Both the position numbers and the translations under genes were made by a program. 64,000 nt of DNA, taken from assembly GCA_002269645.1 (NCBI GenBank), contig NIVC01001676.1, forward strand, positions 1-64,000, in the 5' to 3' direction. This DNA comes from Macrostomum lignano (lineage: Eukaryota). A model generated the notes under the pieces. The model made no database searches and was not told where the DNA came from. It was given only the letters and a program-made list of their open reading frames with translations. Below are positions 2,322 to 33,514 of this stretch, in pieces (positions within the stretch are counted from its first letter, which is position 1; each line of letters opens with the position of its first letter).

Positions 2322-4366
2322 ATGTCTCAAAGTGCAGCACCGGACGGTGGCTGGGCTGGATGGTGCTGCTGGCGGGTCACTGCATGCACATTCTGGCCGG
2401 CGGGCTCGACAGGCGTCTGGAGTGTTCTACAGGGAGATCCTCAAAGAGCTGCAGCAGTCTTCTGCCTCCACTGCCGGCTTCAGCGCTTTGCTGTTCGCTT
2501 CCAGGTTCATGAGCGGTGAGTGCATGGTTCAAGTTGCGTTTCAGATTAGATTAGATCAGATTAGAGATTTTAAGAGACTTCAGCGAAGACTGATCTAGAG
2601 CTTGTATTGTATTTGTCTGGCACACAACGTGAGTTATTCAGTTTCTGAGTCCTCCAGCAGCAAAAATGTTTACACCGATAACTTTCAGGCCCCATTACCG
2701 GCGTTCTCTGCAAGTATTTTGGCTGCCGCAGGGTCATGATGGCTGGAGGCCTCATATCCTTCGTCGGCATGCTGCTGAGCTCGTTCTGCCGCAGTCTGTC
2801 GCTCATCTACCTGACCCTCGGCTGCATGACGGGAGTCGGCAACGGCCTCGCCTACACTTCTGGCCTCTTGGCTGTCAACGACTACTTCAGCCGACGCAAG
2901 GCCACCGCCCTCGCTTGGCGACCGCGGGCACCGGAGTGGGCAGCTTCGTGCTGCCTCTGCTCACCCAGTACCTCATCCAGGTGTACTCATTCCGCGGCTG
3001 TATGCTCATTCTGAGCGGCCTGTCGCTCAATCTGGTGTGTGTGGCGCTCTGCTTTACCGCTGCCCGCTGAGAAGAACTTAGCAAATGGAGCACTCGAGGC
3101 CGAGGCTGCAGACGCGACTTCTGAGGCACTCATCGATACAGCAGGTCAGAGTGAAACCGCTGAAAACAAAAACTCCAAGGATTCCACCGGCGAGAAAGTC
3201 CTGGGCCAATCCATGACAACGATCAAGTCAAGGACGTCCCTGGAGCGAAGCGGTCGAGGCTTCTGCATGGAGCTGTGGGCCAACTTCGATCTGAAGCTGT
3301 TCCTCAATCCGTACTTCTGCTTGCTGGCCGCCGCCACTCTGTTCATCTCGTCGGGCTTCAAGTCCGTGGCGGTGATCCTGCCGCACCATGCGCAGCTTCG
3401 CGGTCTGGACGACATGACATCTGTTCTGCTCATATCCATATCCGGTAGGTTCGCATCAAGTATTTATTTAACTATGCATACTTCGTTTTGAAGACGGGTT
3501 TCGCCAAAACACACTACGGAAATAGGAGAGTTCAAATTAACTGCACTAGACGCGCAGTTCTGCACTGACAAGCTGTAAAATGCGCGATGTATGATCTATG
3601 TCCGACTTGCCTTCGATATTATGCTCGTATTATAGATTCGGTCAACATTCGATGCTCGTCCAAATGTATTGGTGTACTTGATGTAAATGTACTTAATTCC
3701 TATAACCCAAAGGCGATCGAAGGTTCGTAAGTCCATGCGGGACTTATGGTATAATAAGCGGATTCTTTCTGCAGTAGGACGTTGCGGTGAAAATTTACTG
3801 TTTTGGGTGCCGTTTTTTAGTGCAGAAATGACTTGATTTCTTTTTACCATCATAAAATTATGCACATTTTCTGCCTAGGCGCCTGCGACACTGTGTCCAG
3901 ATTCTCAGTGGGGCTGTTCTTCGACATCCCCCACCTGGTGCCGCACCGAAGGCGCATCTGGACACTCGGCATGCTGCTCACCGCCTCCAGCATCACAGCC
4001 TTCGTTTTCATGCAAAATTTAATACCGTTCATCCTGATCTCGGGAGCGTTCGGCCTGACCTCCGGGCTGTTCATGAGCCAGTTGTACTGCATGCTGATTG
4101 ACCTGATCGGCAGGGAGCGGTCCCGCTCCGGCATCGGCCTGCTGATCCTCTGCTTCGGCTTCGGCGTGGCCGTCGGACCGCCGACAGCGGGCGCGCTGAA
4201 GGACGTCACGGACACTTACCAGCTGTCATTCTGCGTGCTCGGCGCGTCCACCTTCGTCGGCTTCGTCTGTCTGTGCGCGCTGGACGTCGCGCTGATGACG
4301 CAGCGACGACAGCGACGGCGGCTGAACTTGAACCCTACCCTGGATATTTCCGTAGATCAAAAGTGA
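2322..4366 (+). CDS. Monocarboxylate transporter (MFS, SLC16/MCT family) paralog 2; exons 2322-2515, 2689-3444, 3879-4366; about five 1-nt frameshifts in exons 1-2
   Basis: MCT N-terminal motif PDGGWGW (restored by one G at ~2355), GPITGVLCKYFGCRRV, YFSRRKATALGLATAGTGVG, FDLKLFLNPYF, 12-TM-like hydrophobic pattern. Introns are GT-AG with phase 1/1 (2516-2688; 3445-3878). Confidence 0.9.
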
Positions 4367-5852: not shown

Positions 5853-6789
5853 GTAGAGAGTTTGCTTTTAATAATCACGATCAGTGCTGACTAATTTGTA
5901 ATAATTAGTCATTTCTGATTTATTTTGGACTTTTTATTAAATATTTATTACGTAATTCAATTCCCGTTTGGCTGAGAAAACAAACAAGTCAAATCTATAT
6001 TCAAGTGGTCTCATATTTGGAGCTATAAAGGTCAAATGAATTCAGCATTTCCAAAGAAGATTCCTATCTAAAAAGTACAAAATCCCCAAAAAATAGTAGC
6101 TAAACATCATTTTCCTTTGGAGTCTAAAAATAGTGACTGTAGATTGAAAGTCTTAACCTATGTGTAGCTTATTCAAATGCGTTTAGATCCCTTTCTTAGC
6201 TGCCTCCCTAACTCCCGATTGGGGTCTCAATTTCCAATTCTGAGTGTCGAAGTAACGGTAGACGATACTACTGAATCAAAAGTAGCTTAATAGCATACGA
6301 GCTTTTGGTATTAAAATAAAAATACACTTTCATTTAAATTTTCTCGTCTATACATTCATACACTTTCATGTCCATAGTGGAGACGCAGATACTTTAAGTA
6401 GCAAGTAAGGCATTTTTCGAAATTTTTTATGTTACACAACTTAACAACTCTGAAAAGATGGAGAACTTCGACAGCTTTGTTTTTCTACTGTCTTTGTCTC
6501 TTAAAAATCTTAAAAATTTAGAAAGACCCAAGCATTTTGCCGCTTACTTTGGGGTACCTCAATATTTGACGAACTCAACCTACTGAGTTTTGGTTTCTGC
6601 CTGTCAATGTCTTGGACTGGGAGATTGGGAAGCTCCCCGAGAGAGACGGGATGAAGGCCTCTCCATGTGTTGTACCTTCCTCGGCCTTTTGAATAATTAA
6701 TTGATTTGTACGAGGGGTGGGCGCGTCCGGCTGAAGGGGATTAAATAAAGCTCTAGTGGGGCCGCTTAGCGGGGAGGCGGAAGCTGGAG

Positions 6790-9097
<2,308 letters not shown>

Positions 9098-10191
9098 GCA
9101 GATATATTATGTTAGATGACCCCGATTTTTTAATTGTAGCCCATATTTAAAATTTACGTTTTTCGTAAACGATGAAATGAAAATTTTACATTATGGTTAA
9201 AAAATTAACGGCAGTATTTACGGTAATCAATTTTAACAAAAGATTTTTGATAGGACTAGCGAAAAATTTTTTATAAAAGCGTCATTTTTAATCGTGTCTT
9301 TAATCGTGTCTAAGCGTTAATCGTGTTTGTTAAGGTTCAAAATTAAAAATTTATCGCCATTGTTAATATCGTCAGAGTAGAAAAAAAGCAAAATAACTAT
9401 AGTCAAATTATTTTGAAAATTTTCCATGTGGTACTTTTTTAATTTTTATGATTACCCCATTGATGCAATCAAGATAAGTGAATTCTTACATTTACTTTAT
9501 CTTACAACAAATTCACAACCTAATAAGTGAGTCTTGAAAAAGTTTATTTAAAGATAAAACTATTTTTATATTCGCGCGTTTCATTATACGTATAAAAGTA
9601 AAATATTTTAAATCAAGAATAATTAATTATTTAATCGTTAGACTATTTATTCGGATGCGGCTGGATGCCAAAATATTTCACTTCAAATATAACTAAGATT
9701 TTTTTCTGTCTCCAGGTGAGATACATTATAAATTATCAAATTATTTACTTCTAGGAGAGAAAAACATTTTTTTTTACTTTTTTAATGTCCTTTTCGATCC
9801 GGACTTCAATCCAGAATACCTTTTGTGAGTTGGTTAAAACGTGAAAATAAATCAGTTAAAATCAATTGAAACGCTATATAGTGACCGTGCATTATTAATG
9901 ATAATTTTATCTACTCAGAAAAACACAGAGGCCTAAATATTTAACAACACAAGTAAAGCGCTTCTGTACAGTAGGAAGTTGGATCAATTTTCTTACTTTG
10001 TTTAAATGAGGTAATAAAAATAACTAGAAATAGCAAAGAAACTGGTTATACTACTTACTATAGTGGTTATAAGAAAATGAATATGTAGTGAAGAACAAAA
10101 CTCTTTTTGGCAAAGTCCAACAACCCTAAAAGAAAATAAGTAGAAAAATGGCTAAATTCACCATTGGCTCAACAAAATGTTGCTCGGGTCG

Positions 10192-10347
10192 CCATCACAA
10201 GCTCGAAAAATCACATCGTCGAACACTGATTTATAGCAACCACCATCACAAGCTCGAAAGGGGTAGGGTTAGGCTTGTGCCTTTTCGAACTTTGATGATG
10301 GTTGCTAAATCAGTTTTCGACGATGTGATTTTTCGAGCCTGTGATGG
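10192..10347. repeat. ~70-bp imperfect inverted repeat (foldback/MITE-like hairpin)
   Basis: Left arm ~10192-10261 (CCATCACAAGCTCGAAAAATCACATCGTCGAACACTGATTT...) is the reverse complement of right arm ~10280-10347; the loop contains TAGGGTTAGG. Confidence 0.85.
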
Positions 10348-10578
10348 GCCCCAACAAAATTAGTGGGGGGACTTTTCAAGTACAGAGTCAAAATAAATGA
10401 TCACAGCTTGTTATAGAATTTTTAAATAGAATAGTAAAAGAGGCCGCACAAAACCAAGCGACGAATGAAGCTCACCTGAAGATTCATAACAGCTCTTCGG
10501 ATTTCCCATCTACCCAGGATTTCTCGCCTGATCCGCGAATTTTCTGAACAAACAAAAAAATCAGCACTTAAAGCTACA

Positions 10579-11704
10579 CTATACTACGTAGTCAGTAGTC
10601 CCGTGCAGCCGCCGCACCGCAGCCTCGGCAAAGCAGGCGGCGGCCAGGGCGGCAAACGGCTGCCAGTGCAGGCCCTGCTCTCCTGTGTGCGAGTCCGCGC
10701 AGCCCCGGATCAGCAGGAAGGAGTCGCAGCGGCTGCCTAACGCCGACTCCAGCACTTCGTCGAATCCGGCGTCCGCTCCGATCACCTTCGAGGTTGTGTT
10801 CGAGGCCAGCCGGTCGGCGGCGCCGGACAGCGCACCGCAGGACACGGCGCCGAAAGCGACATTCGGCGCAGCGACGGTGGTCCTCGGCGGCCGAGCGAAC
10901 GCTGGCGCCTCCGCGGCCAGTGACTCCAAGATGGACGTCCAGTTGATGGCCTCCTCTGCTTTGTCCTCGACGGGTTCAGCGGCTGCTCGCGCGGCGGTCA
11001 GGAGGCGCCGATCCACAGACCGCCAGCTGCGCCCTCTGGCGACGTCCAAGTAGTCTCCACCGACGTCGCCAGCGTCCCCATCGCCGATAAAGACGTCGCC
11101 GAGTCGGCAGGCGCCGGACGGGGAACCGCCGACGCCGACCAACAGGAGATGCTCGACGTCCTGGAAGACGCCCAGCAGGCGGGTGACGACGTTTCCACAG
11201 GCGACCCGAGCCTGGAGGCCGTCGGGCGAGCCAACAACCGCCGGCAGCTTGGTGCTGACCACACGACGCCTCCCAATGCGGCCCAGGGTGTACACGTGCG
11301 AGTCCCGGCCGCCGCCGCGGGTCTCGTACTGTACGAAGGACTCCTTGTCCAGCGTCACCGCGTCCAGCGCCCGTTTCTCGCACATCAGCCTGGTTACCAT
11401 GGCAACGGTTGGTCGGGCCCGCCGCAGCAGCTGCAGGTCGGCGAAGTTGGCCCGGTTGAAGCTGACAACACGGCCCATGCCCCAGCGGTCCGCGCCGCTC
11501 TCTGACTGCGACGGCTGTTGCAGCTTCTTGTTGCCGATTTTGCTGCTTCTAGAAATTTCGCTACCTTCCGGCTGCTCCTCCTGCAGCAGGTAGGCTGTGC
11601 CGCCGGGCACCGGCCGCATGAACAGCCGGCGCTGCGCCACCAGCTCGTCCAGCGCCGATTCTGTGGCGCCCCGATCCGAGCTTGAGTCGGCCGACTCGAT
11701 GGCT
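10579..11704 (-). CDS. Terminal exon encoding the purine/uridine nucleoside phosphorylase superfamily (PNP_UDP_1/MTAN-like) domain
   Basis: PTVAMVTRLMCEKRALD...VYTLGRIGRRRVVSTKLP...GNVVTRLLGVFQDVEHLLLVGVGG...RLGDVFI...FLLIRGCADSHTG...WQPFAALAAACFA are typical of this fold. Acceptor CAG precedes 11704. Listed separately in case it is an independent gene. Confidence 0.82.
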
Positions 11705-14700
11705 CTGTCGGTTGGAGCAATCGTTGTTGCTTTTGTTTGCTCAATAGCTTTTCTTCATGATTCTGGTTCACGTGATTCAGGATCACACTGACTGTCGGTT
11801 AAGCAATCCGGGATCACTAACTTCCGGTTCACTTGATCTGGTACTATTAACTTCCAATTCACTTTATGTGGGATCACTGAGTTTCGGTTTAGCAGAACCA
11901 GGATCACTAAATTCTGGTTTAGCAGAACCGAGATCATTAACTTCCGGTTTAGCAGATCCGGGATCACTAACTTCCGGTTTAGCAGAACCGAGATCATTAA
12001 CTTCTGGTTTAGCAGAACCGGGATCACTAACTTCCGGTTTAGCAGAACAGGGATCACTAACATCCGGTTTAGCAGATCCGGGATCACTAACTTCCGGTTT
12101 AGCAGATCTGGGCACAGAATATATTCTGTGGATCTGGGATCACTGACTTCCGGTTCAGCAGATCCGGGATCGTTGACTTCTGTTTTACTTGATCCGGGAT
12201 TATTGACTTCCGGTTTCCGATGATTCGTCCTCATAAAAATTTTAGTTTTCAAGTTTCCAGGCCATATGCTTCTGGTACATAAACTTAGTGAGAGCCTCCA
12301 GTTTTGTCAATAACAGGAAGAGAAAAAATGCCCCCCACACGTTTTTTTAGGCTGATACAGCTGCGAATCTCACCCGACAAGTTCGTTCCGATTGAGCACA
12401 TTCGGGAACGCCGCCTCCACTAGGCTGACCAACTGGTCCTGAAGGCGCTTCGCTTCTGAAATTTAAATGATGAATTCTAACAAATTGCTAGTGGGACAAA
12501 AATGGGCTATTAAACCCTGAATTTGGAATGGGGAATTCGGAATCTGTCGAAGTCTCACCGAGCTCCCGATTTCTCTGTTCGAGTTCGGCCGCCCGATTCG
12601 CCCGCTGCTCGGCCAGCGCCTCGGCCGTCCGTCGCTCCCACTGTTCGGCATCCCACGTCAGCGGCTCAAGTCCGTCGATGGCCGCTCGGCGCCAATTCTC
12701 GCGCTGCCAACGGCGCCGCGACTCGCTGCGCGCCAGTTCCAAGCTCGCCCGACGCGCCGCCGCGCCTTCGCCCTCCACGACAGCTTCGGCGCCGGCTTCG
12801 GGCAGCAGCTCGAAGGCCAGCAGCGGCACCTCCCGGTCGGTGTCGCCAGCGGTTCGTGTCACCACCTTCAGACTCCGTCGCCTGCTGGCCGAGTTGCCGG
12901 CCTCCTGATCCAGTCGCAGGCTGCTAAGACCGGCCGGATCCGCCGCTTCGAACGGCAGTCGCCATGCCGGCCCGCCCCTGTCCTCCACGACTAGCGCCAG
13001 GAGGCTCCGACGCTCTGACGACGGCTCCAGCGACGCCAGACGGATGACGGTGGGCCGCTCCGAGCTCGACACTCGACGATTCAGCGGCTCAAGCAGCTGG
13101 AAGTCGCTGGCCGCGGCCGCATCGAGGACTTGCGGGAAGGCGGCCGGCGGGACCAACGCGGTGCACAGTGAGCGCAGCAGGAGCAGGCACAGCGGCTGTT
13201 CCACCTCCGTCTCCGTCGGCGCCGCCACATCCGCGCTGGCGTCGACTTCTTCGCGTCGTGGCAGAACCCGGATGTCGAGCAGGTAGTTGCCCGGCTGGGG
13301 GAAGCGGATGTGCACCTGGAGAGGCAGGCGGAGACAAGTCATTGTAGTTGGCAGGGGGATCTTGCAAAGCGAGTCTTATGAAATCGTGTACTTGATTTGC
13401 CGAACCTGAAATCCTTCGGGCGCGCCGTTGACCATGACAAAGCTGCTCAGCGGCTCTGCCAGCAGGTCGCCAGGCCGCAGTCGCTGTAGGATCGCCCGAG
13501 CCACGTAGCGGCCCTGCGTTCTGAACAGCAGCGTCAGCTCGGCCTCGTGTCGCAGGCTCAGGCACGGCTCCCCCCCGCCTCCGGGCAGCGTCGGCGACTT
13601 CAGCTGGATTTCGTCGGTCAGGCGTCTCCTTCCGAGCCGTCGCTGCTGCTGGTTGTCGACGTTGGCGGGCCAGCCGAGCAGCGAGTCGCAGCCGGGCAGG
13701 CCGAGGTGAGCACCGGAGGCGGCCGTGTCGGCGACCAGCAGCAGCTCGCAGAGCGGTCGCAGCCTGGCGGCGTCGCGCCAGATGGTCACGGCGAACCAGC
13801 CGCTGCGAGGGGCTAGAAATCGAAAGCGGCGGTCTCGGCCAGCGCGCTCCGACCACTGTAGAACATGCCGCTTGAGGCCGTCGCCGGTGTCGGTCGGACT
13901 GTCGACGTCGCCGCCGAATGTGACGCAGCAGGGTAGGGGAGCGTCGGGATTGTCTCCTATGTAGTTCAAGTAAGAGCATGGCGGATGAGTCATAAAGTGT
14001 TTCTCTAGAATCGATGAGTCATAGAAATTTAAACTTTATAGCTGATAAGTCTCATCTGTAGAATGTACACTTCAGAATTAATGAGTCATAGAATGCACAA
14101 TCTAGAACTGGTGAGTCATAGAATGTACACTCTAGAACTGATGAGTCATAGAATGTACAATCTAGAACTGGTGAGTCACAAGTCGCACCCAGCGGATTCG
14201 TAGAGGTCAATAGCCAAGCTGCCTCGCCATCCTCAGCCTCCAGGGTCGCCGCTTCCGCCTCTTCCGGTTGACAGCCCATCAGCTGAACTCCCTCGAGCTC
14301 GGCCTCCTCCGTCAGGCCAAACTCGGCCAGCTGGCCGGCCGGAAAATTGGCCGGCTCCGGTGCCGCGGCCGGGCAGTGAACCACGTAGGCTGCGAAGTGC
14401 TCAGTGAGCCAGTCCGGTCCGCGTTGAACTCCAACTCGAAGCTCGAAGCGGCCGGCTAGGGGGGCGAGGAATTTCAGACAGACGCGACCGCTGGCCAGTC
14501 GGATCGGCTTGCTGACTGCGGCGCCGGCTACCGGAGTGCTGCCGGAGTTTCTGCTGCCCACCTGCTCGGCCTTGGGTGCGTGAGTGAATTCATGAGTGAG
14601 TTCATGAGTGAGTTCATGAGTGAGAGAGTAAGTAAGTGAGTGAGTTCATGAGTGAGTTCATGAGTGAGTTCATGAGTGAGAGAGTAAGTAATTGAGTGAG

Positions 14701-16407
14701 TTCATGAGTGAGTTCATGAGTGAGTTCATGAGTGAGTTCATGAGTGAGAGAGTAAGTAAGTGAGTGAGTTCATGAGTGAGTTCATGAGTGAACTCATGAG
14801 GGAGTTCATGAGTGAGTTCATGAGTTCATGAGTTCATGAATGAGTGAGTGAGTGGGTGAGTGAGTGAGTGAGTGAGTGAGTGAGTGAGTGAGTGAGTGAG
14901 TGAGTGAGTGAGTGAGTGAGTGGGTGAGTGGGTGAGTGAGTGAGTGAGTGAGTGAGTGAGTGAGTGAGTGAGTGAGTGAGTGAGTGAGTGAGTGAGTGAG
15001 TGAGTGAGTGAGTGAGTGAGTGAGTGAGTGAGTGAGTGAGTGAGTGAGTGAGTGAGTGAGTGAGCAGGTACCTGCACAATGTACCGATACCGCCCCGCGA
15101 CGGTCTCCTGCAGCAGCAGGTCGGCCACTCCTCCCTGGCAGGGGATGACGCACAGCGGGCAGTTGACCGGCCGCAGTCCGCAGACCCCCATGGCGGCCCG
15201 GTTGCCATCGAAGTAGGCCGGCAGCCGGTGAAACTCGTCGAGGCTGAGCGGCCGGGCCAGCAGCTGCCAGTCAGGTCCGGCGCCCTCCGGCAGCAGCGGA
15301 TGGTGCGAGAAGGCCAGCCGGGCCGGGTCAGTCAGGAAGAAGAAGTCGTTCCGCTGGGGCACCGCCGCGGCGGCCACGGCGGCCTCCGAGGCCTCAGCGT
15401 CGGCCGCCAGCGGGAGGCCCGCCGAGCCCCAGATGGCATCGACGTGGCGCCACTCGCCGTCGATGAAGCAGGCAAACCAGGCGCCGCCGACGTGCGACCG
15501 ATGGCCGGTGGCATAGTTGGCGCCCTTCTTGAGGCCCTCCAGGCGCTGGCAGGGAACTCCGCTGAGGCTGAGTAGGAATGTGATGAAGAATTGAGAACTC
15601 TTCTGAGAACAAATCATTTTAGCGCCACAGCAACTACAGTGAATGATTTTCGCGCCACAACAACTACAAGTAAGTTATTTCGGCGCCACAACAACTACAG
15701 TAAGTTATTTCGGCGCCACAACAACTACAGTTTGCCGCCACAACAACTACAGTAAGTTATTTCGGCGCCATAACAACTACAGTTTGGCGTCACAACAACT
15801 ACAGTAAATGAAGATTTCGGCGCCACAACAACTTCAGTAAATGAAGATTTCGGCGCCACAACAACTTCAGTAAGGGATTTTGGCGCCACAACAGAACAGA
15901 CGCTCCTCACCTCATGACCGCCTCGAACACCTCGGACTGCCAGTCTGGCCGGCCGGCCGCCCGATCGGCCAGGCAGGGCAGCCGATGCAGCTCTCGGGGC
16001 CGCTCGGCCAGACGGCAGACGAGTCCGAAAGCGGCCACTGTCCGGTCCAGATCTTCCGGACAATCAGCAAAGAGGCGACGGCAGAGGCCGGCCAAGTCCG
16101 AACCGGATTGAAGGTCGAGAGTTCGAATCCTGGCCAGGCCGGCCTCGTACCTGGCCGGCTCCAGCAGTTCGGACTTCAGCCGGCTGGGCGGGAACGGCTG
16201 CGGCTTCTGCTGGGCGGAGGTCGGCGACGTCAGAGGCGGCTGGCCGCGGCTTCGCTGAAGCTGCTGCAGCCTGTCCGGCGTGGGAATTCCGCAGTCGGCC
16301 AGCGCGCCGGCCAGCTCTGAAGGCGAGGCCGGTAGGACGAACTCCTCCAGCGGGATTTCGTCCGGAGCGTAGCGGTAGTCGCTGTAGTAGCTGTGCTGCG
16401 GCAGCAT
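10579..16407 (-). CDS. KY/hillarin-like transglutaminase-fold protein fused to a C-terminal nucleoside-phosphorylase-like domain (~1296 aa); exons 16407-15911, 15567-15072, 14570-14189, 13956-13406, 13315-12559, 12455-12374, 11704-10579
   Basis: TGc-family segment SGVPCQRLEGLKKG...AWFACFIDGEWRHVDAIWG...NDFFFLTDPARLAFSHHP...WQLLARPLSLDEF, followed by beta-rich repeats (VHIRFPQPGNYLLDI). Six GT-AG introns with matching phases 2,0,1,0,1,2; exon sum 3891 nt is divisible by 3. Two acceptors have in-frame alternatives (15561, 14561). The start codon is uncertain. Confidence 0.75.
11797..12215. repeat. 30-bp intronic minisatellite (TTCCGGTTTAGCAGAACCGGGATCACTAAC)
   Basis: Direct reading; gives the 10-aa repeats in ORFs 11755-12252. 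Confidence 0.93.
13985..14180. repeat. 30-bp intronic minisatellite (GATGAGTCATAGAATGTACACTCTAGAACT)
   Basis: About six degenerate copies. Confidence 0.85.
14578..15064. repeat. (GAGT)n microsatellite grading into a 12-bp GAGTGAGTTCAT repeat
   Basis: Direct reading; fills the intron between 15072 and 14570. Confidence 0.97.
15618..15895. repeat. ~30-bp intronic minisatellite (GGCGCCACAACAACTACAGTAAGTTATTTC)
   Basis: About nine degenerate copies. Confidence 0.9.
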
Positions 16408-16861
16408 CTTCTGTTCTGGTATTCGGCATAAAACTCACCCGAGCTGAGCAACTGTAGGAGCTCTGCTTAAACTGAACTGCAGGCTTTTCACCTGCCTACT
16501 CGCCGTAAGATAGCGCAGGCCGGCTGTAAAATTGACTCGCAGATAAGGCCAGAGCCAGGTGTACAGTGCAGTGTACAGATTTAAACTACAAGAACTTGTG
16601 CGCATACTTTAGCTACTTTAAGTAGCAAGCGCAGAAAAGAGACAATGAAAAATCCAACACTTGGAAAACTACTAAAAATGACGGCAGTAAAACTTTATTT
16701 ATATACAGCAGTTAAATTTATCTCATGGAAAATGTGATAAAGAATGATTGTTTGATTGGAAACTGTACATGAATTTTATATGCTTGCAGTAAAGAAAGTC
16801 ATTTGGTGCCGTCAAAATTTTAGGCGCCATACATGTAAATTCTGTAGGCGTCTCCATATCG

Positions 16862-17505
16862 ACACAGTAGGGAGCCCATTAACACAGTAGGGAGTCCAAT
16901 TGACACAGTAGGGAACCCCATTAAGACAGTAGGGAACCCCATTAACACAGTACGGAGCCCCATTAACACAGTAGGAAACCCCATCAACACAGTACGGAGC
17001 CCCATTAACACAGTAAGGAGCCCCATTAACACAGTAGGGAGCCCCATTAACACAGTAGAGGGCCCCATTAAAACAGTAGGGAGCCCCATTGACACAGTAG
17101 GGAGCCCCATTAATACAGTAGGGAGCCCCATTGACACAGTACGGAGCCCCATTAACACAGTAGGAAACCCCATCAACACAGTACGGAGCCCCATTAACAC
17201 AGTAAGGAGCCCCATTAACACAGTAGGGAGCCCCATTAACACAGTAGAGGGCCCCATTAAAACAGTAGGGAGCCCCATTGACACAGTAGGGAGCCCCATT
17301 AATACAGTAGGGAGCCCCATTGACACAGCAGGGAACCCCATCAACACAGTACGGAGCCCCATTAATACAGTAGGTAACCCCATTGACACAGTAGGGAGCC
17401 CCATTAACACAGTAGAGAGCCCCATTAACACAGTAGGGAGTCCAATTGACATAGTAGGGAACCCCATTAAGACAGTAGGGAACCCCATTAACACAGTAGG
17501 GAGCC
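16862..17505. repeat. 21-bp minisatellite (GGGAGCCCCATTAACACAGTA) between the Tiki stop and the KY-like start
   Basis: About 30 copies; 7-aa repeat LPTVLMG in ORF 16820..17701. Confidence 0.96.
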
Positions 17506-17532: not shown

Positions 17533-21603
<4,071 letters not shown>

Positions 21604-27692: not shown

Positions 27693-27999
27693 AATAATAA
27701 TAATAATAATAATTGATTATACCTGACCCAATTGGGCCAGATGTGCAACCGACAGCTCAGCCGCAGCTATTGCGCGGCGCATCTGAAGGCTGCGTACGGC
27801 TGTTCAGTCCAAGGACTGGGGGGGGTCGTCACACACATCCTCAATTACCCCAGCTAATGCTGGCACCCATTTTACAGCTGGGTGAACTGAAGCAATGCAG
27901 AGTTAAGTGTCTTGCTCAAATTGATCCAGTGGAATCAGGAATCGAACCCCCGACCTTCAAATCGTGAGTCCGACGCTCTAACCACTAGTCTACAACCCC
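27693..27999 (-). mobile_element. tRNA-derived CORE-type SINE (family B) with (ATT)n tail
   Basis: Minus strand: GGGGTTGTAGACTAGTGGTTAGAGCG (A-box), anticodon-like arm TCGGA-CTCACGA-TTTGA, B-box GGTTCGATTCC (27948-27938), then TTGAGCAAGACACTTAACTCTGCATTGCTTCAGTTCACCCAGCTGTAAATGGG resembling the CORE-SINE domain, ending in (ATT)n at 27713-27693. Confidence 0.85.
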
Positions 28000-30900
28000 T
28001 ACCACTAGGCTACAACCCCTACAACTAGGCTACAACCCCTACCACTAGTCTACAACCCCTACCACTAGTCTACAACCCCTACCACTAGGCTACAACCCTT
28101 CACTAGGCTACAACCCTTCACTAGGCTACAACCCCTACAACTAGGCTACAACCCCTACCACTAGGCTACAACCCCTACCACTAGACTACAACCCCTACCA
28201 CTAGGCTACAACCCCTACCACTAGACTACAACCCCTACCACTAGGCTACAACCCCTACAACTAGGCTACAACCCCTACCACTAGGCTACAACCCCTACCA
28301 CTAGGCTACAACCCCTACCACTAGGCTACAACCCCTACCACTAGTCTACAACCCCTACCACTAGGCTACAACCCCTACCACTAGGCTACAACCCCTACCA
28401 CTAGGCTACAACCCCTACAACTAGGCTACAACCCCTACAACTAGGCTACAACCCTTCACTAGGCTACAACCCCTACAACTAGGCTACAACCTTTCACTAG
28501 GCTACAACCCCTACAACTAGGCTACAACCCCTACCACTAGGCTACAACCCCTACAACTAGGCTACAACCCCTACCACTAGACTACAACCCCTACCACTAG
28601 GCTACAACCCCTACAACTAGGCTACAACCCCTACAACTAGGCTACAACCCTTCACTAGGCTACAACCCCTACAAATAGGCTACAACCCTTCACTAGGCTA
28701 CAACCCCTACCACTAGGCTACAACCCCTACAACTAGGCTACAACCCCTACCACTAGACTACAACCCCTACCACTAGGCTACAACCCCTACCACTAGACTA
28801 CAACCCCTACCACTAGGCTACAACCCCTACAACTAGGCTACAACCCCTACCACTAGGCTACAACCCCTACCACTAGGCTACAACCCCTACAACTAGGCTA
28901 CAACCCCTACAACTAGGCTACAACCCCTACCACTAGGCTACAACCCCTACAACTAGGCTACAACCCCTACAACTAGGCTACAACCCCTACCACTAGGCTA
29001 CAACCCCTACCACTAGGCTACAACCCCTACCACTAGGCTACAACCCCTACCACTAGGCTACAACCCCTACAACTAGGCTACAACCCTTCACTAGGCTACA
29101 ACCCCTACAACTAGGCTACAACCCTTCACTAGGCTACAACCCCTACAACTAGGCTACAACCCCTACCACTAGACTACAACCCCTACCACTAGGCTACAAC
29201 CCCTACAACTAGGCTACAACCCTTCACTAGGCTACAACCCCTACAAACTAGGCTACAACCCTTCACTAGGCTACAACCCCTACAACTAGTCTACAACCCT
29301 TCACTAGGCTACAACCCCTACAACTAGGCTACAACCCTTCACTAGGCTACAACCCCTACAACTAGGCTACAACCCTTCACTAGGCTACAACCCCTACAAC
29401 TAGGCTACAACCCCTACAACTAGGCTACAACCCCTACCACTAGGCTACAACCCCTACAACTAGGCTACAACCCTTCACTAGGCTACAACCCCTACAACTA
29501 GGCTACAACCCTTCACTAGGCTACAACCCCTACAACTAGGCTACAACCCTTCACTAGGCTACAACCCCTACAACTAGGCTACAACCCCTACCACTAGTCT
29601 ACAACCCCTACCACTAGTCTACAACCCCTACCACTAGGCTACAACCCTTCACTAGGCTACAACCCTTCACTAGGCTACAACCCCTACAACTAGGCTACAA
29701 CCCCTACCACTAGGCTACAACCCCTACCACTAGACTACAACCCCTACCACTAGGCTACAACCCCTACAACTAGGCTACAACCCCTACAACTAGGCTACAA
29801 CCCCTACAACTAGGCTACAACCCTTCACTAGGCTACAACCCCTACAACTAGGCTACAACCCCTACAACTAGGCTACAACCCCTACCACTAGGCTACAACC
29901 CCTACAACTAGGCTACAACCCCTACAACTAGGCTACAACCCCTACCACTAGGCTACAACCCCTACCACTAGGCTACAACCCCTACCACTAGGCTACAACC
30001 CCTACCACTAGGCTACAACCCCTACCACTAGGCTACAACCCCTACAACTAGGCTACAACCCTTCACTAGGCTACAACCCCTACAACTAGGCTACAACCCC
30101 TACAACTAGGCTACAACCCTTCACTAGGCTACAACCCCTACAACTAGGCTACAACCCCTACCACTAGGCTACAACCCCTACAACTAGGCTACAACCCCTA
30201 CCACTAGGCTACAACCCCTACAACTAGGCTACAACCCCTACCACTAGACTACAACCCCTACCACTAGGCTACAACCCCTACCACTAGGCTACAACCCCTA
30301 CCACTAGGCTACAACCCCTACAACTAGGCTACAACCCCTACAACTAGGCTACAACCCTTCACTAGGCTACAACCCCTACAAATAGGCTACAACCCTTCAC
30401 TAGGCTACAACCCCTACAACTAGGCTACAACCCCTACAACTAGGCTACAACCCTTCACTAGGCTACAACCCCTACAACTAGGCTACAACCCCTACCACTA
30501 GGCTACAACCCCTACCACTAGGCTACAACCCCTACCACTAGACTACAACCCCTACCACTAGGCTACAACCCCTACCACTAGGCTACAACCCCTACCACTA
30601 GTCTACAACCCCTACCACTAGGCTACCACCCCTACCACTAGGCTACAACCCCTACCACTAGGCTACAACCCCTACAACTAGGCTACAACCCCTACCACTA
30701 GACTACAACCCCTACCACTAGACTACAACCCCTACCACTAGGCTACAACCCCTACAACTAGGCTACAACCCCTACAACTAGGCTACAACCCTTCACTAGG
30801 CTACAACCCCTACAACTAGGCTACAACCCTTCACTAGGCTACAACCCCTACAACTAGGCTACAACCCCTACAACTAGGCTACAACCCCTACCACTAGGCT

Positions 30901-33514
30901 ACAACCCCTACAACTAGGCTACAACCCTTCACTAGGCTACAACCCCTACAACTAGGCTACAACCCTTCACTAGGCTACAACCCCTACAACTAGGCTACAA
31001 CCCTTCACTAGGCTACAACCCCTACAACTAGGCTACAACCCCTACCACTAGTCTACAACCCCTACCACTAGTCTACAACCCCTACCACTAGGCTACAACC
31101 CTTCACTAGGCTACAACCCTTCACTAGGCTACAACCCCTACAACTAGGCTACAACCCCTACCACTAGGCTACAACCCCTACCACTAGACTACAACCCCTA
31201 CCACTAGGCTACAACCCCTACAACTAGGCTACAACCCCTACAACTAGGCTACAACCCCTACAACTAGGCTACAACCCTTCACTAGGCTACAACCCCTACA
31301 ACTAGGCTACAACCCCTACAACTAGGCTACAACCCCTACCACTAGGCTACAACCCCTACAACTAGGCTACAACCCCTACAACTAGGCTACAACCCCTACC
31401 ACTAGGCTACAACCCCTACCACTAGGCTACAACCCCTACCACTAGGCTACAACCCCTACCACTAGGCTACAACCCCTACCACTAGGCTACAACCCCTACA
31501 ACTAGGCTACAACCCTTCACTAGGCTACAACCCCTACAACTAGGCTACAACCCCTACAACTAGGCTACAACCCTTCACTAGGCTACAACCCCTACAACTA
31601 GGCTACAACCTTTCACTAGGCTACAACCCCTACAACTAGGCTACAACCCCTACCACTAGGCTACAACCCCTACAACTAGGCTACAACCCCTACCACTAGA
31701 CTACAACCCCTACCACTAGGCTACAACCCCTACCACTAGGCTACAACCCCTACCACTAGGCTACAACCCCTACAACTAGGCTACAACCCCTACAACTAGG
31801 CTACAACCCTTCACTAGGCTACAACCCCTACAAATAGGCTACAACCCTTCACTAGGCTACAACCCCTACCACTAGGCTACAACCCCTACAACTAGGCTAC
31901 AACCCTTCACTAGGCTACAACCCCTACAACTAGGCTACAACCCCTACCACTAGGCTACAACCCCTACCACTAGGCTACAACCCCTACCACTAGACTACAA
32001 CCCCTACCACTAGGCTACAACCCCTACAACTAGGCTACAACCCCTACAACTAGGCTACAACCCTTCACTAGGCTACAACCCCTACAACTAGGCTACAACC
32101 CCTACAACTAGGCTACAACCCCTACCACTAGGCTACAACCCCTACCACTAGGCTACAACCCCTACCACTAGGCTACAACCCCTACCACTAGGCTACAACC
32201 CCTACAACTAGGCTACAACCCTTCACTAGGCTACAACCCCTACAACTAGGCTACAACCCTTCACTAGGCTACAACCCCTACAACTAGGCTACAACCCCTA
32301 CCACTAGACTACAACCCCTACCACTAGGCTACAACCCCTACAACTAGGCTACAACCCTTCACTAGGCTACAACCCCTACAAACTAGGCTACAACCCTTCA
32401 CTAGGCTACAACCCCTACAACTAGGCTACAACCCTTCACTAGGCTACAACCCCTACAACTAGGCTACAACCCTTCACTAGGCTACAACCCCTACAACTAG
32501 GCTACAACCCCTACAACTAGGCTACAACCCCTACCACTAGGCTACAACCCCTACAACTAGGCTACAACCCTTCACTAGGCTACAACCCCTACAACTAGGC
32601 TACAACCCTTCACTAGGCTACAACCCCTACAACTAGGCTACAACCCTTCACTAGGCTACAACCCCTACAACTAGGCTACAACCCCTACCACTAGTCTACA
32701 ACCCCTACCACTAGTCTACAACCCCTACCACTAGGCTACAACCCTTCACTAGGCTACAACCCTTCACTAGGCTACAACCCCTACAACTAGGCTACAACCC
32801 CTACCACTAGGCTACAACCCCTACCACTAGACTACAACCCCTACCACTAGGCTACAACCCCTACAACTAGGCTACAACCCCTACAACTAGGCTACAACCC
32901 CTACAACTAGGCTACAACCCTTCACTAGGCTACAACCCCTACAACTAGGCTACAACCCTTCACTAGGCTACAACCCCTACAAACTAGGCTACAACCCTTC
33001 ACTAGGCTACAACCCCTACAACTAGTCTACAACCCTTCACTAGGCTACAACCCCTACAACTAGGCTACAACCCTTCACTAGGCTACAACCCCTACAACTA
33101 GGCTACAACCCTTCACTAGGCTACAACCCCTACAACTAGGCTACAACCCCTACAACTAGGCTACAACCCCTACCACTAGGCTACAACCCCTACAACTAGG
33201 CTACAACCCTTCACTAGGCTACAACCCCTACAACTAGGCTACAACCCTTCACTAGGCTACAACCCCTACAACTAGGCTACAACCCTTCACTAGGCTACAA
33301 CCCCTACAACTAGGCTACAACCCCTACAACTAGGCTACAACCCCTACCACTAGGCTACAACCCCTACAACTAGGCTACAACCCTTCACTAGGCTACAACC
33401 CCTACAACTAGGCTACAACCCTTCACTAGGCTACAACCCCTACAACTAGGCTACAACCCTTCACTAGGCTACAACCCCTACAACTAGGCTACAACCCCTC
33501 ACTAGGCTCAACCC
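27981..33514 (-). repeat. 5.5-kb satellite of 18-20-bp units equal to the SINE 5' end/A-box (AGGGGTTGTAGCCTAGTGGT)
   Basis: + strand units CTACAACCCCTACCACTAGG, CTACAACCCCTACAACTAGG and CTACAACCCTTCACTAGG; the first unit is the SINE's own head. Confidence 0.97.

Follow-up and report, generated by a model that had tools for sequence, protein, structure and literature searches.

Within a 64,000-nt stretch of the Macrostomum lignano genome (here called the window; contig NIVC01001676.1, assembly GCA_002269645.1), seven minus-strand exons between positions 16407 and 10579 splice into a coding sequence (CDS) of 3891 nt, 1296 codons and a stop, which belongs to the gene Mlig026044g1. Its product joins a scaffold of the KY/hillarin type (residues 1-895) to a winged helix followed by a domain with a purine nucleoside phosphorylase (PNP) fold (residues 895-1296). 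On balance, we favor the reading that Mlig026044g1 is one real gene, in which a KY/hillarin pseudoenzyme scaffold acquired a winged-helix and PNP module by exon shuffling and whose product would be a scaffold-anchored, winged-helix-gated nucleosidase. The sequence is already deposited and uncharacterized: the spliced protein is identical at 1296 of 1296 residues to PAA65175.1 (UniProt A0A267EUF2, 'hypothetical protein BOX15_Mlig026044g1', Macrostomum lignano). New here is the identification of its domain arrangement, of the module as a unit, and of the probable exon-shuffling junction between scaffold and module.

KY and hillarin are structural or cytoskeleton-associated proteins. HMMER was run against 1.84 billion representative proteins and returned 619 hits, of which the best 150 were examined for matches to both halves of the protein. 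Relatives of residues ~100-450 included the Hirudo hillarin Q964C7, molluscan and annelid KY-like proteins, and M. lignano paralogues. When re-scanned with phmmer, hillarin (P0061) matched residues 158-283 with domain E values of 5e-13 and 6e-10, and dozens of KY-like proteins matched the same stretch. Ig-like_KY (PF23265), the sole Pfam family found on the N-terminal half, lies at residues 625-663 over the exon 4/5 junction, scoring 29.5 bits with the middle region alone (cut-off 27) and 24.6 bits, below threshold, with the full protein. The profile of the scaffold family also matched FAP246 of the Chlamydomonas ciliary central pair (E 3.4e-18). AlphaFold2 modeled residues 98-895 at moderate confidence (mean predicted local distance difference test score, pLDDT, 68.7) as an alpha+beta core (residues 1-200 of the model), four to five beta-sandwiches and two long helices (residues ~815-894), and a Foldseek search with this model matched tandem Ig domains and the chain of FAP246. 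The original prediction, which was made from the DNA alone, had called this half a KY/hillarin transglutaminase-like scaffold with beta-rich repeats and a charged helix; hillarin among the HMMER hits and Ig-like_KY above threshold bear out the family, and the modeled Ig-like sandwiches and helices bear out the order of the repeats and the helix.

An alignment of 64 homologous cores places Pro154 (window 15948-15946) at the position of the catalytic Cys and Gly194 at that of the catalytic His, while the Asp is kept as Asp209 in the segment WRHVDAIWG; the Cys is also missing from many KY/hillarin-like proteins. Because both Cys and His are gone, and because Pfam scans of the full protein and of its regions gave no match to Transglut_core, the transglutaminase-like core is a pseudoenzyme and not an active transglutaminase or protease. 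A paralogue (P0012) can be aligned as far as residue 889 and has the same helix motif, which is followed by an Ala/Lys/Glu-rich tail; by this comparison the charged helix is native to the KY-like family.

The module encoded by exons 6 and 7 has relatives of its own. The closest named one outside the species is Babylonia areolata LOC143299208 (32% identity over 351 residues), which consists of a Methyltransf_FA domain, a winged helix (Pfam HTH_69) and an unassigned C-terminal domain. About 100 further relatives stood among the best 150 HMMER hits, including Lingula anatina LOC106159868, Orchesella cincta Ocin01_14443, the chiton protein Liolophura LOC135472764 and scallop proteins, so that the module occurs in molluscs, a brachiopod and a springtail as well as in a stand-alone M. 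lignano paralogue, Mlig017830g1-g3 (583-589 residues). They share one plan, in which a variable N-terminus is followed by a winged helix of the HTH_69 type bearing an AYPN motif, then by a linker and a domain of ~300 residues. In an alignment with 43 members the counterpart of the AYPN motif in the fusion is AFPNVL, at residues 910-915.

With an alignment of 40 members as input, AlphaFold2 modeled residues 885-1296 at a pLDDT of 83.1 and a predicted template modeling score (pTM) of 0.85. The model shows a helix continuing from exon 5, a winged helix at residues 899-962 with helix-helix-helix-strand-strand (H-H-H-E-E) topology, a disordered linker at residues 967-997, and an alpha/beta domain at residues ~1000-1290 with the fold of PNP and of methylthioadenosine/S-adenosylhomocysteine (MTA/SAH) nucleosidase (MTAN). 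All of the top 50 Foldseek matches in the PDB (50/50) were MTA/SAH nucleosidases or purine nucleoside phosphorylases, with E values to 3.4e-10, a probability of 1.0, and template modeling (TM) scores of 0.57-0.74 on target length; a phmmer search of the PDB with the whole protein gave no matches. HTH_69 (PF22979) is matched by the relatives and, below threshold, by the paralogue, and the PDB profile matches of the winged helix were generic (2LVS, eS25, RPC6, MarR/Lrp). A Z-alpha label was also considered and was rejected, the top 60 of the PDB profile search containing no Z-alpha domain. The winged helix thus appears to be of the HTH_69 type rather than Z-alpha. Winged helix and PNP domain together make up one pre-existing, inherited module of an existing invertebrate family. 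The prediction had listed a winged-helix-like exon 6 and a PNP/MTAN-like domain; both folds stand according to AlphaFold2 and Foldseek, and the notion of two independent additions gives way to that of a single inherited module.

The border between the halves coincides closely with an intron. When the hits were re-scanned, relatives of the scaffold were found to stop at residue 889 and relatives of the module to begin at residue 892, the exon 5/6 junction being at residue 895. Exon 5, the last exon of scaffold (KY-like) origin, ends in phase 1 at the donor G/GTGAGAC (the slash marks the splice site), and exon 6, whose peptide is EAKRLQDQLVSLVEAAFPNVLNRNELVG, codes for the last part of the long helix together with the N-terminal half of the winged helix, which carries the AFPNVL motif. 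In the stand-alone paralogue Mlig017830g1 (locus L002) the winged-helix exon is likewise of phase 1 at its start and phase 2 at its end, and its 3' boundary falls at the counterpart of the residue where exons 6 and 7 of the fusion meet, so that paralogue and fusion share the same intron within the winged helix. The boundaries of this exon were read directly; the remaining boundaries of the paralogue are approximate and come from tblastn. The paralogue occupies 6001-17172 of NIVC01001260.1 (~11 kb, ~8 exons), and the translation of the locus is not exactly the deposited protein. It has three introns within the PNP domain, where exon 7 of the fusion has none, which suggests 3'-biased intron loss. 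GC3 (the G+C content of third codon positions) and codon bias are equal in the scaffold half and the module half, and the AlphaFold2 helix runs unbroken across the junction (residues 886-910, pLDDT >90).

The matching phases, the boundary at exon 5/6, and the points where the two sets of relatives end and start argue for exon shuffling, and they point to intron-mediated recombination, joining the two-exon module to the helix exon, as the simplest account. By this account a KY-like paralogue would have received the module by recombination into the phase-1 intron that follows its helix exon, and the module would thereby have lost the N-terminal domain that it has elsewhere, the scaffold taking that domain's place. 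Searches of the 64-kb window by tblastn with full-length relatives found no trace of that usual N-terminal domain, and no second KY-like gene.

Outside the gene's own cluster, none of the best 150 of the 619 HMMER hits among the 1.84 billion representatives matched both halves. A protein with both halves would be expected to rank near the top; each representative stands for relatives more than 50% identical, which are hidden behind one entry, and that entry may be a fragment. A word-indexed search with the full protein, which should detect close orthologues, matched only the M. lignano cluster. Word-indexed searches at full length and with the C-terminal part were almost empty (the query is of low complexity and its coding GC-rich), and the exhaustive HMMER search worked in their place. 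With present data the combination of KY-like scaffold, winged helix and PNP domain therefore appears restricted to M. lignano. The original prediction had noted no known protein with both families and had proposed a lineage-specific chimera; the architecture search gave no sign that the combination is common in databases, and the domain and structure analyses of the spliced protein (Ig-like_KY, AlphaFold2, Foldseek) fit the domain order it had laid out.

To what kind of PNP-fold protein the C-terminal domain belongs can be judged from profile comparisons. The family profile matched the PNP_UDP_1 domain at the N-terminus of an Aspergillus NLR with an hhalign probability of 99.4% (E 6e-22), while its match to MTAN was marginal (PDB profile E 0.003) and the fused domain is 11-17% identical to MTAN. 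Because of this difference we regard the domain as of the NLR-associated type and not as a housekeeping enzyme; its nearest kin appear to be effector domains of the NLR, Cap17-like type, not salvage enzymes. The fusion retains 16 of the 16 columns that are invariant in the family, including Glu1031, Asp1125, Asp1233 and Asp1259, and profile alignments set Glu1031 opposite MTAN Glu12 and Asp1259 opposite MTAN Asp197. Since all family-invariant residues are kept, the PNP-like domain may be active, possibly as an effector of the ATP-nucleosidase type.

Several observations weigh against a single gene for a working, scaffold-anchored nucleosidase. Among the columns that are at least 80% conserved, the fusion keeps 53 of 70 and the stand-alone paralogue (P0008) 62 of 70. 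The fusion lacks a conserved loop (the 'DKL...HP' segment), has Ser in place of Tyr1260, and has Gly in the column of MTAN Glu174, where the register is uncertain. The isolated domain scored 15.2 bits (E 0.014) on Pfam PNP_UDP_1 (PF01048), below the cut-off of 25.1, and its relatives scored 20.6-24.9 bits. Pfam scans found no HTH_69 match on the fusion protein itself, just as they found no Transglut_core, and for the PNP domain and its relatives the PADLOC models gave nothing significant and an NCBIfam scan gave no family that passed its threshold. The searches turned up no orthologue in any other species that would point to maintenance of the fusion by selection. The claim of a single mRNA rests on deposited annotations, and two 1-nt deletions in a second genomic copy, described below, could be assembly errors or signs of decay or incipient pseudogenization.

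The first of these points bear on the main rival explanation, which accepts the fusion but takes the PNP-like domain to be catalytically dead, with a ligand-binding or structural role, so that the protein would be a scaffold of two pseudoenzyme domains. This would agree with the state of the transglutaminase-like core, which is already that of a pseudoenzyme, with the loss of 17 of 70 highly conserved positions, of the loop and of Tyr1260 (a divergence greater than that of P0008), with the Gly in the Glu174 column, and with the sub-threshold Pfam score. Set against it are the complete set of invariant residues, those set opposite MTAN Glu12 and Asp197 by profile alignment among them, the mostly conservative nature of the substitutions (I to M/V, V to L, Y to F), the frequency of Gly at the 'Glu174' column within the family, and a fold that is predicted at high confidence. 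We consider a dead domain somewhat unlikely.

It is also conceivable that separate products dominate, a KY-only protein made by retention of intron 5 and/or a PNP-only protein made from an internal start (Met999), the full fusion being a minor isoform. Translation that reads through into intron 5 meets a stop after 26 codons (12490-12488), in-frame Met codons occur at residues 950, 999 and 1024, and the second genomic copy is annotated as a truncated product of 719 residues. However, the donor and acceptor of intron 5 are both strong, the deposited transcript annotations give such isoforms no support, and the 719-residue model derives from a 1-nt gap in a run of five cytosines and not from an alternative transcript. 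Dominant separate products are, in our judgment, improbable.

That second copy, the paralogous or homeologous Mlig026044g2 on NIVC01000275.1 (locus L001), contains all seven exons (7/7) at 98.6-100% nucleotide identity. A comparison of the two CDS shows 10 synonymous and 4 non-synonymous substitutions, every one of them in exons 1-2. The ratio of non-synonymous to synonymous rates (dN/dS) between the copies was set aside as uninformative, there being only these 14 substitutions, all in those two exons. Introns 1-2 are 91-95% identical, the differences lying mostly in tandem repeats, and from intron 3 onward the identity is 99.5%. The single-base gap in exon 5 (L001 13529-14284) shortens the C5 run to C4, and because of it the deposited protein PAA86533.1 is truncated at 719 residues. 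The other single-base gap, in exon 7 (L001 15150-16274), changes GGCGC to GGGC and lies outside any homopolymer.

An annotation artefact would mean that two adjacent genes, one KY-like and ending with exon 5, the other coding for the winged helix and PNP domain, had been merged through read-through or by the transcript assembler, with the in-frame junction a matter of luck. Of the matching phases only that of exons 5 and 6 is independent evidence here, and it would arise by chance 1 time in 3; M. lignano makes polycistronic precursors and has widespread trans-splicing (Wudarski et al. 2017, PMC5730564); and the older annotation of the species includes clear chimeras, such as P0159, in which a retroelement is joined to a winged-helix/PNP sequence. 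The gene models of the present assembly come from a genome-guided RNA-seq assembly (StringTie, TACO), which was split into genes by TBONE at mapped trans-splice and poly(A) sites, with open reading frames called by TransDecoder (Wudarski et al. 2017, PMC5730564). In spite of these cuts the deposited model is still one gene; the 1296-residue product therefore reflects an assembled transcript that was left unsplit between exons 5 and 6. A0A1I8HJZ6 (205 residues), from the older, independent annotation of another assembly, spans the exon 5/6 and 6/7 junctions at the same residues, so that two annotations on different assemblies agree on them. At 103 nt, intron 5 is too short for a promoter or for the N-terminal exons of a separate gene. 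Exon 6 is without an in-frame ATG, and a start at the first Met (residue 950) would cut the winged helix. Moreover, the relatives of the module all have at least 170 residues before the winged helix and no such sequence is present in the window, and the modeled helix is continuous over the junction. These points together make an artefact highly improbable. No mention of Mlig026044 was found in literature text or in the supplements of two M. lignano expression papers.

It is hardly credible that the C-terminal domain is simply a housekeeping enzyme, whether MTA/SAH nucleosidase or purine nucleoside phosphorylase, that became fused by chance: its top structural matches are bacterial MTAN and PNP and it has a weak MTAN profile match, but beyond the low identity and marginal profile match to MTAN given above, the NCBIfam MTAN models (PRK05584/TIGR01704) are not matched by the fusion and give its relatives only 22-32 bits against a cut-off of 169, the NLR-type PNP domain is much closer, and the winged helix that always precedes the domain is absent from housekeeping enzymes.

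The fusion can thus be set beside four groups of known proteins. Hillarin, KY and FAP246 share with it a homologous transglutaminase-like core, the FFFLTDP...WQLL signature, and KY-type Ig-like beta-sandwiches after the core. Loss of the Cys is common in the KY/hillarin family, and the fusion has lost the His too. Hillarin has two transglutaminase-like (TGc) units where the fusion has one, and hillarin, KY and FAP246 have no winged helix or PNP-fold domain, whereas the fusion has both. Other KY-like paralogues in M. lignano have other C-termini, namely a coiled-coil tail (P0012) or calponin-homology domains (P0033). The latter, from the older annotation, has a KY-like N-terminus and four calponin-homology domains and may be a merged model; P0159, in which reverse transcriptase and RNase H are joined to a paralogue of the winged-helix/PNP module, is clearly merged, and P0033 should therefore be treated cautiously.

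The invertebrate winged-helix/PNP proteins align end to end with exons 6-7 at 32-47% identity and with the invariant residues kept. They are ~530-780 residues long and begin with a Methyltransf_FA or unassigned domain of ~170-370 residues, where the fusion has its 895-residue scaffold instead; the loops of the fused copy are shorter. The Cap17-like and NLR PNP_UDP_1 effectors, which are ATP/dATP nucleosidases (CBASS Cap17, Detocs DtcC, fungal NLR 'Pfs', sponge DDAN), have the same fold, and an alignment with the fungal NLR PNP domain shares the motif ...RG(I/C)xDYxD...W(Q)xYAA and the catalytic Asp with the family profile. Both they and the fused domain are modular and joined to variable partners, but unlike those systems the fusion has no NACHT/NB-ARC, Death, STING or other recognized immune domain. 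Bacterial MTAN (1JYS, 3EEI) is the best structural match, with TM scores of 0.65-0.74 on target length and, in profile alignments, putative equivalents of Glu12 and Asp197; the fusion differs from it in large insertions, in the preceding winged helix, and in missing the equivalog thresholds.

The gene model itself was obtained by reading the minus strand of 10300-16800 and translating it in three frames, after which the exons were joined. In this region GC-rich open stretches alternate with AT-richer, repeat-filled ones. All six introns (6/6) are of the GT...AG type and all six phases are compatible, so that the reconstruction, at 1296 residues, confirms the seven in-frame exons and matching phases that had been predicted; the strong donor at 12559 and the 82-nt exon with its peptide were likewise found as described. 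The coordinates are given in Table 1. Exons have a G+C content (GC) of 0.59-0.72 and a GC3 of 0.72-0.89, and introns a GC of 0.37-0.50. When bases were shuffled, the sequence stayed open in frame in 2 of 20000 trials for exon 7 and in 0 of 2000 for the full CDS. Because of the exon and intron composition, these shuffle tests, and the significant homologues of both halves, the gene model goes beyond what chance would give. The three-frame translation shows an in-frame stop upstream of the start ATG, and the exon 1 stretch 16407-15988 was covered by tblastn with paralogues P0010/P0161. Exon 2 could begin at either of two in-frame acceptors separated by 6 nt (15567 and 15561; ...ctcag/CCTCAG/CGG), by which Leu-Ser could be added or dropped; the deposited model uses the upstream one, 15567.

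Table 1. Exons of Mlig026044g1 and the intron at the junction of its two halves (window positions).
Feature	Position	Strand	Residues	Content
Exon 1	16407-15911	-	1-166	ATG at 16407; Pro/Gln-rich N-terminal region, then start of transglutaminase-like core
Exon 2	15567-15072	-	166-331	Remainder of transglutaminase-like core; FFFLTDP...WQLL motif of KY/hillarin proteins
Exon 3	14570-14189	-	332-459	First Ig-like beta-sandwich and acidic linker
Exon 4	13956-13406	-	459-642	Ig-like repeats
Exon 5	13315-12559	-	643-895	Final Ig-like repeats and two long charged helices (residues ~815-894)
Intron 5	12456-12558	-		103 nt; fusion junction
Exon 6	12455-12374	-	895-922	82 nt; phase 1 in, phase 2 out; first exon of the module
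Exon 7	11704-10579	-	922-1296	Stop included; rest of winged helix, linker, MTAN/PNP-fold domain

Tandem repeats make up much of four of the six introns (15611-15893, 14581-15064, 14059-14178 and 11796-12216). Intron 1 has a 30-bp unit, intron 2 both TGAGTGAG and a 68-bp unit, intron 3 a 60-bp unit, and intron 6 has 14 copies of a 30-bp unit. The rest of the window is also rich in repeats. A 23-bp tandem array, AAGACTCTGAGCAGCCCAACCTG, with ~980 copies at a 97-98% match, fills the last 22 kb (41783-64000) and continues past the end of the window; the flat profile of GC and skew over these positions is due to it. A 20-bp array, ACCACTAGGCTACAACCCCT, of ~283 copies lies at 27981-33514 and has a strong negative GC skew. 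Micro- and minisatellites are spread across 1-41000, among them CAGA x147 (6937-7525), TCTA x130 (19935-20452) and a 24-bp unit x50 (18389-19587). Two neighboring exon-like open reading frames on the plus strand encode an MFS_1 transporter (2666-4366; Pfam E 2e-13) and a BTB/POZ domain (7574-7942; E 1.7e-12).

As to function, Cap17-like PNP domains from bacteria, from a fungal NLR protein and from a sponge Death-domain protein cleave ATP and dATP, and arthropod and nematode proteins join a Cap17-like domain to a Z-alpha-like winged helix (Rousset et al., bioRxiv 10.1101/2023.01.24.525353). Compared by description, the invertebrate winged-helix/PNP family probably corresponds to the 'Z-alpha-like + Cap17-like PNP' proteins (Drosophila, Apis, C. 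elegans) of those authors. In the fusion, the scaffold half may determine where the protein sits or what it binds, much as KY, hillarin and FAP246 act on cytoskeletal structures (the placement of FAP246 in the ciliary C1 central pair is taken from the name of its PDB entry), and would stand in for the usual N-terminal 'sensor/targeting' domain; a pseudoenzyme core fits such a binding role. The C-terminal domain would probably hydrolyze the N-glycosidic bond of an adenine nucleotide or nucleoside and, by analogy with Cap17-like domains, its activity might be that of an ATP/dATP nucleosidase gated via the winged helix. The prediction had proposed that the chimera ties a nucleoside-processing domain to a cytoskeletal scaffold, and it may do so. 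A more specific proposal, which we put forward tentatively and think unlikely, is that a Cap17-like ATP/dATP nucleosidase and its winged-helix gate are controlled or anchored by the KY/hillarin pseudo-protease/Ig scaffold, making the protein a nucleotide-depleting effector of immunity or cell death localized at the cortex or cytoskeleton.

If that proposal were true, the scaffold would add a previously unseen type of sensor or anchor domain to this class of effectors. Should the domain prove to be an ATP nucleosidase, as its NLR-type relatives are, M. lignano, which is transgenic, transparent and amenable to RNA interference, would be a workable animal in which to study such effectors; if it is inert, the gene would simply add another lineage-specific combination of domains to a genome that is repeat-rich and recently polyploid. 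The invertebrate winged-helix/PNP module behaves as a portable cassette, whose partners include Methyltransf_FA, domains without assignment and now a KY-like scaffold, the pattern expected of an effector domain. With both donor families persisting as paralogues and the junction on a phase-matched intron, Mlig026044g1 would be an instance of flatworm exon shuffling that is both clean and datable.

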